A DNA stretch of 64,000 bases from contig CAJFCJ010000019.1 of assembly GCA_904063045.1 (NCBI GenBank), forward strand, positions 1,937,700-2,001,699. Direction: 5' to 3'. Every line of letters begins with the position of its first letter. Position 1 is the first letter of the stretch. The DNA is from Dimorphilus gyrociliatus (Eukaryota > Animalia > Annelida). Shown one piece after another: positions 22,989-32,541 of this stretch. The notes beneath the pieces are model-generated. The model searched no databases and was not told the DNA's origin. It saw only the letters and a program-made list of their open reading frames with translations. The position numbers and the translations under genes were made by a program.

Positions 22989-24490
22989 TCTAGGCTAGAA
23001 AAAGGCGTCTGTTAGTAAAGAAAACGATTCAAAAATTGAACGCCATATTTGATTGTGTCCGTTGCTAAGGTAAAGGTCTGGTTCTCTGAATAATAGCCTT
23101 AAAGGGCCTATTATAAATCTCATTATTAGTCTTTTATTTCTAAAGCTCTTTATTGCTATTCGTACTTAACAAGATACTTAGTATCGATATTTCCTCTATC
23201 GAAGTAAACTTTCCCCCCGAAACGCCTCATCTTATCTTAAAAAAAAAAACCGATTCAAGAATTGGATTGCATTTTCATTACTTAACTTAAGAGGATTAAC
23301 ATTAAATAAGTGCTTACTGTTTTGTTTATATTCTATAGCTAATTTAACAATTAGCTAATCGATTATTATTAAGTAAAAAGGAAATGAATACTTCCTTTAT
23401 TTAAAAGAAAAAAGATAGAGGGAGAAAGATTGAAGAATTTCATCTATTTACGAAATAAAATAGCAACGCGAAATACTTTTTATACACGTTTTGATCAATG
23501 TATTTTTATTGTTTAAACAGCCTTTTTTCTAGTAATAAATTCTATACAGACGTTTCTATAAGAATACTATTTTTATCCATGAAAAAACTATCTATTTTAA
23601 TGAATGATGTTATATTTTGAATTGAAGCGAAAAAAAAACTCTTTTGCTCTCTAAAGGTCACTCATCTAAAGGTTATACACGTTTTCGTTTAGTTCCTTGG
23701 AAAAAATATATACTACGCTTATCAAGCTACATAGGCCTATGGAGATTATTTCACACGCTATCTATTTAATCGTAATAGATTATCTTTGAAATGTATTTAA
23801 TTGAAAGCTTCTTTAGGGCTGATGGACTGATTATGTGATTTACTTTTAGTTTTTCTTGGAAATTGTACAGAACTTAAAGGAAACAATAACATAAAGCTTT
23901 TCCTAATTGTGGCTTATTCACAAAAAGAGAGGAAGAAAGGCAGAGAGAGTGAGAGATAGAGAAAATAGCTCATTGTTTTCTAATGATAACTCATCAATTA
24001 TCAACAATTTCCTAAGAGATTAAGGAAATTCTAAAGAAAAGAAAAGTCGTTTTATTTCTTCCTTCATTGAAATAAACCTAATAAAACTTCTAAAAGAATA
24101 TTTATATAAATTCTTAATAAATTGTATAGATTTAGTAATAAAAAACCTAGAACTTTTCATAAATGTCAATTATATAAAATTAATTAGTATTAATCATAAT
24201 AGTTCGACTGGTTCTATCGACTAAGGGTTCAAATAGATTAGTTTTTAGTATAAAATCTTGATAAACATATTGAGTGAGTAGTGTTAAAATGTATATATAT
24301 ATATATATATATATATACAGTATGAACATTATTCAAATTAGTTAAAGTAATATAACAACTGGTGAGCTATAATAAATTAATAAAGGCGTTGTTTTTCTAT
24401 TTTAAATAGTTGATAATTAAATGAAAATATATTGAATAAATTCGTTATTAGTTAATTATTAAACTATTGAAATATTTTAGGAAATTAAGA

Positions 24491-26244
24491 ATGGACGTCA
24501 GTTTGGTTTTGTTTATGGTGTTAACATTTCAAGGAATTTTTGCAAATTCAAGTAATAATTATTAATTATTTAAATTAACTAAGTTTATAAATTAACTTAT
24601 TTATTTATTTTTTTTATATAATTAGATAGAACTGTTAGTTTTGAAACTATTAATACGTTCCTAATGGAGGTGTTTGCCGATGATTTGAGGCATGAGGCTT
24701 TGGTTAGCGAACTAAAAAAATCCTCTTCTGATGTTATTTGTTTACAAGAAGTATGGAGTGATTTAAGACTATCAAGGGTTAATTAACATAATTAATATTC
24801 AATTTTCAAAGAAAATCTATCATCTTTATTATTATTTTATAGTTATGCGAAAATTTAGCAGTGTCTTACCCATATTCATACAGTTCCTTACACGCTAAGG
24901 ATGGTTTTCTACCTGTTTCATTAGGATCAATGCAGAGTAAATGTCGTAAGGGTGCACTGGAACGAGTACTAGAATGTTCTGTATCAGCTTGTAAAAATGA
25001 AAGAAGTCTCGATAAATTTTTCGAATGTAATTTTAAAGTAAGCTATTTTAAATATGTTCTAAAATGTTTGAAAGATGATAGTAAGTCTTTATCGTTTGAT
25101 AAATTGTTCTATTTTATAGAAATGCAAAATATTACAAACACTTGGTGCAAAGTGTTTTGAATGTTATGTTATGCAGGCGAACATATGCAAATATAAAACA
25201 TCTACAAGGTTAAGCTTAACTGAATTCCTTATATGTTTAACGAATGATCTATTTTCTCAAAATGGAATGTGCACGTTAGTATCTCTTTACTTTTAATATT
25301 AACTATTTTATATTGTCAACCATTAGACAATTGGGAAGTGAACCAAATCGAAATCTAGGACTGTTAATATTGAGTAAAATTCCACTTAGAGTTGATTCTT
25401 TAACAACGTTTATTTACAATGAAAATGTTATTATTAAAAGAGGAATATTGGAAGCTAAACTGGTAATAAAAGAAAATGAACTCATTTATAATTCTTTAAT
25501 TATTTTTAAGTGCATATATTTTTCTTCTATGAACAGGAAGATGAATATGAAAGCCTTGTAAGTTGTACTCATCTTTCAGCGGATTCGTCATCATTCTTTG
25601 ATTGTAAGCGACTTTCGTTTACATTTATTTCCGGATCAGGTGTTAACCAAACGATATTTATTTTTTAATTAGACGCCGCTGGATTTAATTCCTGGTTTGA
25701 ACTTAAACAAGACGAAATAAATACTCTTATTAATCGTTATTCGGGCAAGTCTAATGTATATATTATGGGAGATTTTAACGTTGGACCAGAACTGCCAAAA
25801 GAAAATATAAATGGATACTTTCCTGAGTTATATAAGGTTTTAAATATTGCAAAAAATACAAACGAACAAACAAACAAACAAGCAATAGACCTATAATTGT
25901 GATTTTTTTCTCTTGTTTTTTAGAAACTAAGTGATTCTGGATTCAATAATCTAGCTGTAGACTATCTGCATCTATGTAGCTTTTGTAAGAAGAATATGCT
26001 TGTAAAAGTTGTTTATAAGGAAAAAGCTGAAAATTTGATAATTGATGGAATAATACCATTAAAAGTATCAAGAGAATTTAAAACTATCAAGGTGATAATT
26101 CCCTTTATCATTTTCATTACTTTATCCATTTCATTTATGTATTTTAAATAGAGGACAGCAATGAAGAATATTAGTTTACCCTTAAATTTTGACTTTTGTG
26201 TTTCTGATCATTGGGGAATAAAGGCTTCATTTTATGATTATTAG
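24491..26244 (+). CDS. Secreted endonuclease/exonuclease/phosphatase (EEP/DNase I-like) family protein with Cys-rich insert, 9 exons
   Basis: Signal-peptide-like start (MDVSLVLFMVLTFQGIFA) and EEP motifs DVICLQEVW, GLLILSK, CTHL, IMGDFN, IDG, SDHWGI; all junctions GT-AG and in frame. Confidence 0.8.
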
Positions 26245-27161
26245 TGAAATTTGTTATTTTTTTCACGCAGATGTACACACACACACACACACACACACGC
26301 ATACTCTCTTTATCTCTCTATCTCTCTTTCTCTCTGTCTTCGTCTCTTTTCTGTGTCAATTTAGAATTCATAGCAGACAATTAAACAGTAAACATGTTCA
26401 AACTCTGTTATTGTTATGCAATATTTATGATTTTCTTAGGGTTAAAAAGGAAATACGGTTTTTGACGGACAGATTCTATAAATTTTTAGATTCTTTAGAT
26501 GCAAATGTAGGGAATACTATGAATATCACGTTTATATGACAATTATTTCTCGTCCAAGAGATAATTGTAGTTATTATTCTTATAAAAGTACTTATTCATT
26601 AGTGAATAGCGGCGTTAGTGACTTAAATGATAACAAATGCAAATATGAATATCGTTAAACATAATTTCAATATTATCAGTCTTATACTTTATTCAAATCA
26701 GCAAAAATGTAAATTTAACATAGTATAGGTTGAATTATTTGCATATTATTAATATAATATAATACTATAGCCTTTATACTTCAGTCAAATTATCTTTAGA
26801 TCCCTATCGAATGTGAAGACAGTAAAAAGACAAACTAAAGTATTGACAAATGTATCGTGTAATGAGATTTATTCTTCGTACGAAAACTGATTTCGCTCTC
26901 TAAGTTAATCGTTATTTCACGTTGTAAAATGATAAAATAGAGATTTCTAGTTGAATTTTAATCTAGAGAGGCCAACGACGATGACGATGAGAAAGCCAAA
27001 ATCGTTTCGTATTTTTGTTATATTTTCAGTTTTGTAGGATTAAATAAAATCAATACTCGTTTTCAGCAAGCTGAACAGTATTGTGCATAAAACAGAACAT
27101 ATTGAAAATTTGCAAAATCATCCTGTAGAGACATTAGCTGTTTAAGAAGTAAAGTTAAAGG

Positions 27162-28706
27162 ATGAAGATGGAATGTGACCAAGTCCTTTTAGCCCTGGGG
27201 GCATCTGCTATTGCTAAATATCTTGCAATGTATTTCATGGAAAATAAGAAACCAGATAATCTAGAATATGTTGGAAAAATTTCATCTCTTAAACTATTTC
27301 CTGTTAAAAGTCTCGGTGAAATTGATATTAAACGTGCTAATTGTACAAAGATGGGATTAGAATACGAAGGATTCTTTGATAGGTTAGTTAGTTTCTCTTC
27401 TTTAACATATTTCCTAATGTCAGATCTTACCTTAAAAGTTAAACTAATGGCTTAAAAATTCCTTGATTAAATACATCTTCAAAAAGCTGCTTAGATGTAG
27501 TCATTTTCTTTTTTAAAGTTTACGACTTTCCGTACTAAAGAGTATCCCTTACAGGGATTCATACGAATATTTACTATAAAAGGAAACCTACATTGGTTCT
27601 TTCTAACAAATATACGTAATTAATCACGTTTTAGGCGTTGGGTTCTTATAGATAGCGCTAACAAGATAATAACAATGAGAGAGTGCCCGAAACTCTGTTA
27701 TGTTTCCTGTAATCTTTCCGGAGAGAATGTTATCTTTTCTGCTCCTGATCACGAAGATTTGATCGTTAACCGTAATCTGGACACTAAAACTTCCCCACTC
27801 CTAAATATACAGTAAGTACTGTAACGAGTCAAAGGTATGGAGTGAACTTGTGCACTATGTGTTTACATTGTATTCAGAATTCATGGCGATCCACTGAAAG
27901 CTTACGATTGTGGAGATGTTCCAGCCAATTGGTTCGCAGCCTACATAAATGATTCTTCGTCCAGAATCAGGCTACTGTACGCTCCACCTGGCGACACTGG
28001 TCGTTTTATAGTTAATAACAAAAAAGCAACCAATTTTTCGCATAGAGTTCAAGAAGATGATGAAGTAATCACATAGATTTATATCATAAACAAACTATCT
28101 TAAACAGATGAATTTCGTGCAAAATTTATGTGTCCATCTAGGTGGGAACTTCTGACCAAGCTCCGTACTTATTGATTACCAGTGAATCCTTAAAAGACTT
28201 AGAGGGAAAGGTTGGGAGGAACCTAGATAGGTCTTTCAGGCCTAATATTGTTGTTTCTGGATCAAATGCTGCTTTCGACGAAGTAAAAAAAAAAAAAATT
28301 AAAAACAAAAACACATTTAATTAAATGTATATAGTAGTGTATTAGAGTATTTAAATAAGCTCTATAATCTATATTTAGGACGATTGGGACGTTATTTACA
28401 TAGGAGACGCTAGATTTAAAACATGGAAATATTGCGGAAGATGCGTATTGACAACTGTTGATCACGATGAAGGGATTAGAGATCCAAAGGCTGAACCGCT
28501 AATGACTTTAAGAAAGTAAGAAAAATAAGCGTTTAATAAATAGAATGTACAACAATTTCTTCTATAAATAAAAAAAAATGTATAAATTTAGATATCGAAT
28601 GATACATTCTGCCGATCCGTATAACCCCATTTTCGGATTATACCTTGCAAACGAGAAAAAAGGAGAAATCAAAGTTGGTGATAAAATTTATGTCAAAAGA
28701 AGATAA
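27162..28706 (+). CDS. MTARC: mARC/MOSC molybdoenzyme, unit 1 (6 exons)
   Basis: Signal anchor, LFPVKS, DRRW, SDQAPYL, FRPNIVV, CGRC..TTVD, EPLMTLR, FG...G.IKVGD. Confidence 0.92.
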
Positions 28707-29082
28707 ATTAATTATAAAATATAATTCAATAAAATTATAGTAAAATAAAAAGAGACTTTTAGTTTAACTTTAGCAAATAGGTTTGATTATATCTCAACGA
28801 GATAGCAAGAAAATTCACTAGATAGGTGCGCCACCTATATACATAGAGTATACACTTATAACTATTTGTCTACATGTCGTTATTTCGTATTATCTATTAA
28901 CCTTTAGAACTTAGATGGGACAATAACGAAATTAGAGATATCTAGATTACACCATCTGTTGAAATACAAATTCAAGAATTGGTCATTTGTAAACTTTGTG
29001 AAGTAGACAAAAGCTTATTGAAAATAACTATTAAATATAGAATTAAATTACTTTTAAGTAATCGAAAAGATTAATTGGAAAT

Positions 29083-30560
29083 ATGACTTTCGATTCAATT
29101 TTATTAGCATTAGGAGCCTCTTCTGCTTTAAAATATGCAGTTATGTATTTTATGAAGGATAGAAAACCTAACAATCTAGAATATGTTGGTCGTATATCAT
29201 CTTTGAATTTGTATCCTGTAAAATCTTTACAAGAAGTATCAATCCTTCAAGCCAATTGTACTAAAAAAGGTCTTGAATATAATGGATTTTTCGACAGGTA
29301 TTCAATTAAATAAATCTAGTATTATATTTATCAAAAAGAGCTCTTTTTTGTCTATCTGTTTGTTTTTTTTATTGTTTCTTGCTCGATGAAGCATGCTTTT
29401 AAATGATTATTCTTTTTATTTTTTTTTTTTAAAAAAAAAACACAAAAAAAATAATCGAAATATAATTTAGACAATAAAGTTGTCATCCATCCTACGTGAG
29501 TAGAATCATGTTTTACAAAAGAGGTTATACTATCGTAATTAGGCGTTGGGCGTTAATCGACAAGAATGATAAGCTTATTACCCTAAGAGAAATACCCAAA
29601 CTATGCCTTATAAGTTGTAAAGTGTCTGAACAAAGGATTATCTTCTCAACTAATGAACAAGAAGACCTCTCAATTGATCTTGAACTTTATAATGAGCGAG
29701 ACAATAATTCAAAAATTAGCATTGAGTAAGCAAATAGTATTAATTAATTAAATATTAAACTTTTTTCTCAATTAAAGTATATGGGATGATTATGTTGATG
29801 TTTTCGATTGTGGTGAAAAACCATCGGAATGGTTTTCGAGATATTGCAATCAGCATATTAGGCTTGTTTATTCACCACCTGGAGTTACTGGACGTTACTT
29901 GATTAATAGCGTTAATGAAGATCAATTTAAGCACAATATACGTGACGATGACGAGGTTATAGACTATTATTTGCAATCATTGCATAAAGTATTTTATAAT
30001 ATTTTGTAACAGGCTGGTACAGCTAATGATGGACCTTATTTACTGACAACGCAGGAATCTTTCCAGGATGTTGATCGAAGAGTTGATAGATCTTTAAATC
30101 CATCATGCTTTAGATCGAATATTATTATTAATGGGACAAGAGAAGCCTTTGATGAGGTTTGATAAATTAATACATTAGATGGGACGTAGACGATAGTAGT
30201 GAACTTTTATACTTTAAAAACTTAGGATAATTGGGATCTTATTTTTATCGGAGATGCTAAGTTCAAAGTATGGAAATTATGTGGTAGATGTAGTATAACT
30301 ACAGTAATGTTAGATACGGGCGTAAAAGACTTGAAATTTGAACCATTAACAACCTTAAGAAAGTATTTATATACCAACAAAAATATTTTGTTTTTATTAT
30401 AGAAAACCTATTTTAAATATGACATTTTAGATATCGAATAAGACCAGAAATCTCTAGGACAAATCCTATCTTTGGTATTAACTTGGTTCTCATGCAATCT
30501 GGCTCTATTGCAGTTGGTGATAAAGTCTTCGTTAAAAGACTACCAAAAATCAATTTTTAA
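29083..30560 (+). CDS. MTARC: mARC/MOSC molybdoenzyme, unit 2 (6 exons)
   Basis: Same exon structure as unit 1; LYPVKS, DRRW, ANDGPYL, FRSNII, CGRC, EPLTTLR; AATAAA at 30583. Confidence 0.9.
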
Positions 30561-30900
30561 AAAAATCCTATCTTATCAATACAATAAATAAATCCATAGT
30601 GAAAAATGAAAATATGATATCTATTAAGATAATCAATCAATCAATCAATCAATTGCTTGACAAGAATTAGTATTTAATTAAGGAATATGAAATTGTACAT
30701 TTTATTAAGGAATAACATACCTCACATCCTCCTTCTAATATATCTATTGCATTTCCATTAATAGCCGCTTATCTCTGTGATATAATTGCTTAATTTTCTA
30801 TAATTAACAAACGCTATTATGCATATACAAACATAAGTATATTTATAATTACATATATATACTGAAAATAGTACATGTTTCGTTTTTCTAATTAATACAG

Positions 30901-32088
30901 GAGATGGCTTATAGTCAATTCGCAAATGAAAATGGTGACTTTAACTATGCAACCACGTTTCAGTCATATTAAGACAAAGTTTTTGGATGATGGAATTGAA
31001 ATATACGTTCCAACAAATCCTGATATTCCAGCCTTAACTTTAACGAGTAATTTATCAAAATTCGACAAGAATAGTCGATTAGAAATTGTGTAAGAAAAAA
31101 AAACTATATTCCTTTAACTGGAAAGATAAAAAAAAAACGTATATAACAACCATATTAATTTTACAGGCTTTATGGAGAAAAGTGTACCATGTACGATTGT
31201 GGCTTAGCAGGTCAGGAGTGGTTAGAAAAGTTCTTTGATTTAAAAGGCTTCAAATTTCTTTACTTTCCTTCGGAAGTTGGTAGTAGATCAGTTAGCACCT
31301 ATAAGCCAAAATATCCTTGGGTGTCCACAGCTGGAGATCTAACGGATATGGTAAGTTTTCTTTCTTTTTGCTTTAAAATCACTTTGTAAAAATAAAATGG
31401 CCTTACTTCAATAAGAAGCCTTTTTACATATGGATTTATTAACTCTTACAAATATAAATAACAGGTTGGCTGCGCAAATTTTGCTCCTTTTCTCCTAGGA
31501 TCGGAATCTTCTTTAAAGGATCTGAATGATAGGATAAAAGGAGATCCTTTGAAGATGATCAATTTTAGACCTAATATTATTATCGAGGGAACCAAACCGT
31601 GGGATGAGGTAAGAATATAAAGAACATATAGAAAGCAGAAAAGATATTAATATTTATAAAAATTCTACGTAACGTTGTTGACGTTTTCATATATTCTATT
31701 TTTCTAGGACGACTGGGAATACGTCTTCATAAATAATGTTTGCTTTAAAAGAATAAAGGATTGCACAAGATGTCCAATGACTACGCTCGACCCTCAGAAG
31801 GGTAAGCTAAGAGAAGATGGAGAACCACTAAAAACTCTACAAACGTAAGTGATAATTAAGAGAAGGGGAAAAAGGAGGAGGAAGGGGAGGACGTAAATAG
31901 ACATAAATCAATTTACTAAATACAATTCCTTATTCCTATGCGTAAATAGGTTCAGAACAAAACCTGAAGAGTATGGAAATAAAACAATGTTTGGCCTTAA
32001 TGTTCTAACCAAAAGATCCGGAAAAATAACAGTTGGTGACGCCGTTTACGTGATTAGAACCTCTGATTATAAGAAAGGATTTTATTAA
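30901..32088 (+). CDS. MTARC: mARC/MOSC unit 3: exons 2-6 only (30901-31089, 31167-31350, 31465-31608, and two more to 32088), no own exon 1
   Basis: Open in-frame exons with the same intron phases as units 1-2; ANFAPFL, NFRPNII, CTRC..TTLDP, EPLKTL; no exon-1 motif (YPVKS) seen in 30561-30900. Confidence 0.8.
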
Positions 32089-32541
32089 AATAGAACGAAA
32101 AGAAGGGAGGATAATAGAAGATGAGGTTTTTTTTAATCCTTTCTTAGTAAGACGAGGATTAAAACTAATTAATCAATTTGACTAAAATAATAATCAAAAT
32201 GGATTTTAGTTTACTTGTAAAACTTCTTTTTAAGAAATAAACAATTCACTTTAAATAATTAAATATATATTTAATAGCAATGTTACGCAATGGCTATAAT
32301 TTAGAATACATATAAGTATACATATATATATATAACAGGGATAACCTTTCAAATTCTATGCTTCTGTACTTCTTCAATTAGCAAGTAAATGTCATTGATG
32401 ATTCGATAAAGATTGAATATACAAGATTATTTCCGATTGTGAAATCTAATGAAATGCCTTTTCTTTATCAAAAATAATATACAAAATGATATTATTTTAT
32501 ATCAAAAGTTGTGTCTAATAAATAAAATAAATCTGATTAGA

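Follow-up and report, generated by a model that had tools for sequence, protein, structure and literature searches.

Common 5' exons that join alternative 3' cassettes, each equipped with its own poly(A) site, are known from the Drosophila genes lola, mod(mdg4) and broad, and in Anopheles gambiae GST1-alpha a common 5' exon joins alternative catalytic 3' exons. The mARC cluster of the annelid Dimorphilus gyrociliatus resembles these genes in its proposed use of one promoter and one 5' coding exon for tandem paralogous alternatives that have their own stop codon and AATAAA and compatible phases. It differs from them in that its proposed cassettes are whole five-exon molybdoenzyme bodies, and in that the shared exon would contribute not only targeting but also some of the fold, namely MOSC_N strands. 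In UGT1A and the clustered protocadherins, tandem duplicated coding units likewise share exons by alternative splicing, but the polarity is reversed, with a variable 5' part and its own promoters there and a constant 5' part with a variable 3' part here. Read-through "conjoined" transcripts offer a further likeness, as these too arise when transcription runs past the poly(A) site of the upstream gene and the two units are spliced together. Conjoined transcripts, however, tend to be minor side products of neighbors that are each complete, whereas the third unit of the annelid cluster appears to have no other way to obtain a start codon. Conservation of the layout at dS > 1 argues against a transient accident of duplication. 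Vertebrate MTARC1 and MTARC2 also stand in tandem, but as complete, independent genes. The alternative-3'-cassette layout is therefore a known one, and whole five-exon enzyme bodies arranged in this manner in an annelid mARC cluster would be a new case.

The window, a stretch of 64,000 nucleotides of D. gyrociliatus DNA, contains three tandem mARC-like units on the + strand (27162-32088), the exons of which were rebuilt from the sequence and compared exon by exon throughout. Searches of the 78-Mb genome with MOSC and with an exon-5 query yielded a total of three mARC/MOSC genes, every copy within the cluster, and no mARC copy outside it. Units 1 and 2 have six exons each and unit 3 has five, equivalent to exons 2-6; the introns of all three are GT..AG, and their positions and phases are identical across the units. 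An earlier note on this DNA had described a third unit with five open exons that keeps the CxRC motif, and our rebuilt models agree on both points, with all five unit-3 exons open and the motif present as CGRC, CGRC and CTRC in units 1, 2 and 3. The separate AATAAA that the same note had assigned to unit 2 is also present. The features are listed below, with a slash marking splice boundaries.

27162-28706, + strand: unit 1, a complete six-exon mARC gene (rebuilt exon models)
27162-27382, 27635-27811, 27878-28064, 28142-28282, 28379-28515 and 28592-28706, + strand: unit-1 exons, the first (27162-27382) carrying a hydrophobic anchor and the start of MOSC_N
29083-29297, 29543-29725, 29778-29955, 30013-30156, 30226-30362 and 30431-30560, + strand: unit-2 exons
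29083-29297, + strand: unit-2 exon 1, the proposed shared exon, with the anchor and MOSC_N positions 1-31; donor GAC AG/GTATTC, phase 2
29298-29542, + strand: unit-2 intron 1, 245 nt (exon models)
29543-30560, + strand: unit-2 catalytic cassette, exons 2-6, stop included (exon models)
30583-30588, + strand: AATAAA of unit 2, 23 nt past the stop
30561-30900, + strand: spacer of 340 bp with a pyrimidine tract, an in-frame TAA at 30893-30895 and an acceptor CAG as its 3' end
30901-31089, + strand: unit-3 exon 2, with a phase-2 acceptor, G AGA TGG, and MOSC_N positions 36-78
31167-31350, 31465-31608, 31708-31844 and 31950-32088, + strand: unit-3 exons 3-6, stop included, encoding the MOSC domain with CTRC
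32236-32241, + strand: AATAAA 3' of unit 3 (from the sequence)

A multi-exon gene lies directly 5' of unit 1 (24480-26245, + strand, ending in ...SDHWGIKASFYDY), and a (CA)n/(CT)n microsatellite occupies 26275-26345 between the two.

A search with unit-3 exon 2 returned two matches, the public protein P0001 (DgyrCDS11758, CAD5123407.1) at 100% identity and P0002, an 84-residue ORF from the Logan assemblies. The contig that carries P0002, L006 (3159 bp, genomic, with introns present), represents the locus of a related species and consists of a six-exon orthologue of unit 2, its stop, an AATAAA 5 nt past that stop, a 611-bp spacer, and unit-3 exons 2 and 3. The check on synteny in relatives proposed by the earlier note was thereby answered in its favor, as the same succession of unit 2, a spacer devoid of exon 1, and unit-3 exon 2 is found in L006, which indicates that the layout is older than a deep split. 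Word searches for more species with unit-3 exon 2 and P0002 gave nothing new. A further sequence, L010, extends the relative's locus by only 189 bp upstream, and its ORF at 3-185, approximately 390 bp 5' of the relative's unit 2, bears no likeness to the last exon of unit 1 and is not recognizably mARC; unit 1 may be absent or located elsewhere in the relative.

Like human mARC1/2 (6FW2), the cluster combines MOSC_N and MOSC with an exon-1 hydrophobic anchor, the Cys motif, and the FRPNI and VGD motifs; it differs in that unit 3 lacks an exon for the anchor and for MOSC_N positions 1-35. Exon 4 of unit 3 matches Pfam MOSC, and the unit-3 protein P0001, compared with human mARC1 (6FW2), aligns at E = 4e-28, retaining the catalytic motifs and placing CTRC opposite the human CSRC. 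The cysteine described as the Mo ligand of the MOSC domain (PMC10637980) is present in unit 3. The N-terminal part is a different matter. On the Pfam profile, exon 1 corresponds to MOSC_N positions 1-31 and unit-3 exon 2 begins at position 36 of 119, with exon 1 aligning with the start of the crystallized human mARC1. A complete MOSC_N beta-barrel is not encoded by the exons of unit 3 itself and would arise only in a spliced product. The same applies to the N-terminal membrane anchor, since the 19-residue hydropathy does not exceed 0.43 in any unit-3 exon; the best values in the first exons of units 1 and 2 are 1.5-1.7, and this is the only anchor-like hydrophobic segment. Because the Moco is held in a crevice between MOSC_N and MOSC (PMC10637980), a truncated barrel would probably be inactive, and judging from the profile alignment, a barrel without positions 1-35 is unlikely to fold.

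The earlier note had stated that no homologue of exon 1 follows the unit-2 stop, and three separate tests of the spacer (30561-30900) were indeed negative. Six-frame reading of the spacer revealed no exon-1-like open frame on either strand. A whole-genome search with the exon-1 peptide, carried to E values of up to 10, recovered exon 1 of units 1 and 2 alone (2 matches), and Pfam MOSC_N positions 1-35 were likewise confined to these two exons across the whole genome. An exon-1 profile assembled from the segments of 16 homologues (the worm copies and 13 distant homologues) matched just the three known first exons in the window and L006, with all other pieces at E ~1 or worse. Unit 3 is consequently without an exon 1 of its own, homologous or conserved, in both D. 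gyrociliatus and the L006 species. A hidden exon 1 within unit-2 intron 1 was considered and rejected, as this intron contains no ATG..GT phase-2 ORF. The sole MOSC_N match outside the cluster, at G000:C28:615999-616157 on the minus strand, covers profile positions 32-83 with one TGA inside; no MOSC was detected beside it, and it may represent the Moco sulfurase gene or a remnant.

The acceptor at 30901, which had been called clean and equivalent to that of exon 2, reads ...TAATACAG/G AGA TGG. The donor of unit-2 exon 1 (GAC AG/GT) is in phase 2, and joining it to 29543 or to 30901 yields D-R-R-W alike, as had been claimed. This phase match also exists in the L006 species, in which the exon-1 donor joins A AGA TGG in frame and the unit-3 exon starts at the same codon position (...cttgaag/A AGA TGG CTT ATT GTT GAT TCA AAT ATG...); the first exon base is G in the window and A in L006, giving Arg either way after AG (AGG/AGA, split codon). 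Conservation between the window and L006 sets in exactly at the acceptor AG, with ungapped identity of 80-90% in the first 10-20 nt 3' of it versus ~40% in the 10-40 nt 5' of it. In the 25 nt between the AG and Met9 (30926), five of the seven differences, among them the one in the split Arg codon, fall at third codon positions (p = 0.045, from 7 changes only), and RWLIV(N/D)S in unit 3 corresponds by homology to RWVLIDS and RWALIDK in the other two units. An in-frame stop is located 1-2 codons 5' of the acceptor in both species (TAA in the window, TGA in L006), which means that the unit-3 frame can be entered only by splicing. By these sequence patterns, the unit-3 acceptor is functional and the frame is coding from 30901 onward. 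Homologous, phase-compatible donors for 30901 number only two, those of exon 1 in units 1 and 2, and both are upstream. Both species also display a tandem NAGNAG-type acceptor (CAG GAG/ATGG at window positions 30899-30906, AAG AAG/ATGG at L006 2629-2639), and the second AG, if used, would remove one Arg and produce DRW in place of DRRW.

Two upstream features of the complete genes were recognized.

26939-26950, + strand: motif AGAGATTTCTAG, 223 bp 5' of the unit-1 ATG, an exact match to AGAGAYWTCTAG that aligns with the motifs of unit 2 and of the relative
28886-28975, + strand: conserved block 5' of unit 2, a probable promoter, from the alignment to L006, with motif AGAGATATCTAG at 28934-28945

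The ungapped-like alignment to L006 reaches ~190 bp 5' of the unit-2 ATG and retains 73% identity despite dS > 1. The near-palindromic AGAGAYWTCTAG is matched in full at exactly three places, namely 26939, 28934 and L006 247 (spanning 247-258), which lie 140-220 bp 5' of the ATG in the two complete mARC genes and in unit 2 of the relative, and it is likely to be a shared transcription-factor site. The motif is absent before unit 3, and comparison of the window with L006 disclosed no conserved block 5' of the unit-3 acceptor beyond the pyrimidine tract; from this we infer that unit 3 probably lacks a promoter of its own. Docking-site/selector RNA pairing between unit-2 intron 1 and the spacer was examined in the window and L006 and rejected, as it amounted to A-run/T-run complementarity with nothing conserved. 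Intron 1 of unit 2 measures 245 nt, compared with a species median of 66 nt (PMC7854359).

We favor, with a probability of roughly 0.62, the reading that unit 3 is a cassette expressed from an upstream mARC promoter by way of an exon 1 spliced to 30901. The split between D. gyrociliatus and the related species would postdate the loss of unit 3's promoter and first exon, and expression of unit 3 would now depend on a mARC promoter farther 5', probably the one belonging to unit 2. The pre-mRNA would read through the unit-2 polyadenylation site (signal at 30583), and the phase-2 donor at 29297 would be spliced to the acceptor at 30901, with unit-2 exons 2-6 skipped as part of a 1.6-kb intron. In the predicted product, the membrane anchor of unit 2 and the initial 30% of the MOSC_N barrel would be followed by the unit-3 catalytic body, and one promoter with one targeting exon would give rise to two different enzymes with catalytic bodies that are 32% identical. 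Cis-splicing from an upstream exon 1 is the simplest source of the start codon, the anchor, and the missing third of MOSC_N. The features of a shared 5' exon are found here in that the donor and the cassette acceptor are in the same phase and the cassette has no first exon and, presumably, no promoter. Exon 1 of unit 1 is equally in phase with 30901, and exon 1 of unit 2 is the nearest, 1.6 kb away. Several observations count against the shared exon: the public annotation models unit 3 as a separate gene starting from Met11 (DgyrCDS11758), and the relative retains both Met9 and Met11; an intron of 1.6 kb that runs across five well-formed exons and their poly(A) signal would be unusual where the median is 66 nt; and no conserved RNA pairing between donor and acceptor was found.

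The public gene model embodies the main alternative, in which unit 3 is an independent gene driven by a weak promoter in the spacer, starts at Met9 or Met11, and encodes a soluble protein that lacks the anchor together with the initial third of MOSC_N. Unit-3 exon 2 has two in-frame Mets, Met9 and Met11 (30932), and DgyrCDS11758 (253 aa) takes the latter as its start. The Kozak context at Met11 is good, the relative has kept the MKM residues, and bacterial MOSC-only proteins exist (PMC10637980). Against such a start, the eight codons from the acceptor to Met9 are conserved, change in a codon-like manner, and are homologous to RRW(V/A)LID of units 1 and 2, with conservation beginning right at the AG. 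On any unspliced leader, Met11 would come after a strong out-of-frame ATG (30904), which would open a 22-codon uORF overlapping both Met9 and Met11. The spacer contributes neither a conserved upstream block nor the family motif, and the encoded barrel, deprived of positions 1-35, would be unlikely to fold. An independent gene is therefore unlikely in our assessment, and DgyrCDS11758, which leaves out ten conserved codons upstream of Met11, is probably truncated at its N-terminus.

A further alternative is a first exon of unit 3's own that escaped recognition because it is not homologous to the others; it might be a minimal ATG exon within the spacer, or might lie farther off, and would be spliced to 30901. 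Each spacer does contain one ATG..GT phase-2 mini-ORF, at 30687-30694 in the window (MK+TT) and at 2536 in L006 (MRII+AT), but the two resemble each other neither in sequence nor in position, both have weak donors (GTACAT and GTATAC), and the flanking DNA is not conserved. Extending the ATG..GT phase-2 search back to the exon-1 donor added only pieces of unit-2 coding sequence. The resulting protein would still lack MOSC_N positions 1-35, and we consider this explanation quite improbable.

Read-through to unit 3 could also take other forms, either a chimera in which the donor of unit-2 exon 5 is spliced to 30901 or an operon resolved by a spliced leader. The unit-2 exon-5 donors are in phase 2 and thus in phase with the unit-3 acceptor in both species, yet the exon-5 chimera would be a structurally odd double domain. 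The distance of 310 nt from the AATAAA to the acceptor resembles operon spacing; the genome paper, however, found no spliced leaders and no over-represented 5' sequences and reported no operons in D. gyrociliatus (PMC7854359), and translation behind a spliced leader would still have to start at Met9, behind the out-of-frame ATG. These variants are very improbable.

The earlier note had characterized unit 3 as the most divergent of the units and yet intact, and had proposed a dN/dS check on it; both were borne out. Its amino acid identity to units 1 and 2 is 31-32%, versus 53% between units 1 and 2, with synonymous sites saturated in all unit pairs (pS 0.77-0.82), and in the locally aligned parts, its closeness to an amphioxus mARC equals or exceeds that of units 1 and 2. 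Of unit 3 in the relative, L006 carries exons 2-3 only, and the comparison restricted to these exons (123 codons) gave dN 0.19, dS 1.38 and omega 0.14, an excess of synonymous change with p = 8e-14 against neutrality. For unit 2 and its L006 orthologue, dS was 1.27 and omega 0.125. Purifying selection on unit 3 is thus as strong as on its complete neighbor unit 2, and unit 3 is both old and selected. A 5'-truncated duplicate decaying as a pseudogene, as the missing exon 1 and the lack of a shared upstream motif might suggest, is ruled out by this selection at dS 1.38, and also sits poorly with 253 open codons in 31% GC DNA, nine intact splice sites, the kept catalytic motifs, and the match to human mARC1. 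For the shared-exon reading put forward in the earlier note, what stands is the anatomy, a conserved acceptor, a selected unit 3, a frame coding from 30901, and the lack of both an exon 1 of its own and the upstream motif shared by units 1 and 2; the 29297-30901 junction, the donor used, and the control of the choice are what we infer.

Exon 1 of unit 2, compared with L006 390-604, has the lowest pN (0.09) and pS (0.37) among the unit-2 exons, the pS of the others being 0.61-0.76. At conserved residues, codons are identical at 42 of 57 positions in this exon versus 79 of 141 elsewhere (Fisher p = 0.024). The low synonymous change suggests an overlapping constraint, e.g., splicing or translation signals, and is compatible with, though only suggestive of, a double duty of the exon for two cassettes.

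If the junction is true, a single promoter and targeting exon would bring two mARC enzymes to the same membrane, amounting to a compact diversification of a detoxifying molybdoenzyme, and a public gene model that is probably N-truncated would be corrected. Automated annotation can mislabel cassettes of this kind as short independent genes, which bears on gene and paralogue counts in compact genomes. It is conceivable, albeit doubtful, that in the compacted Dimorphilus genome the downstream members of tandem duplicates have recurrently lost their promoter and exon 1 and been retained as alternative 3' cassettes of the upstream paralogue; such a mode, if true, would allow regulatory DNA to be shed while paralogue diversity is kept.
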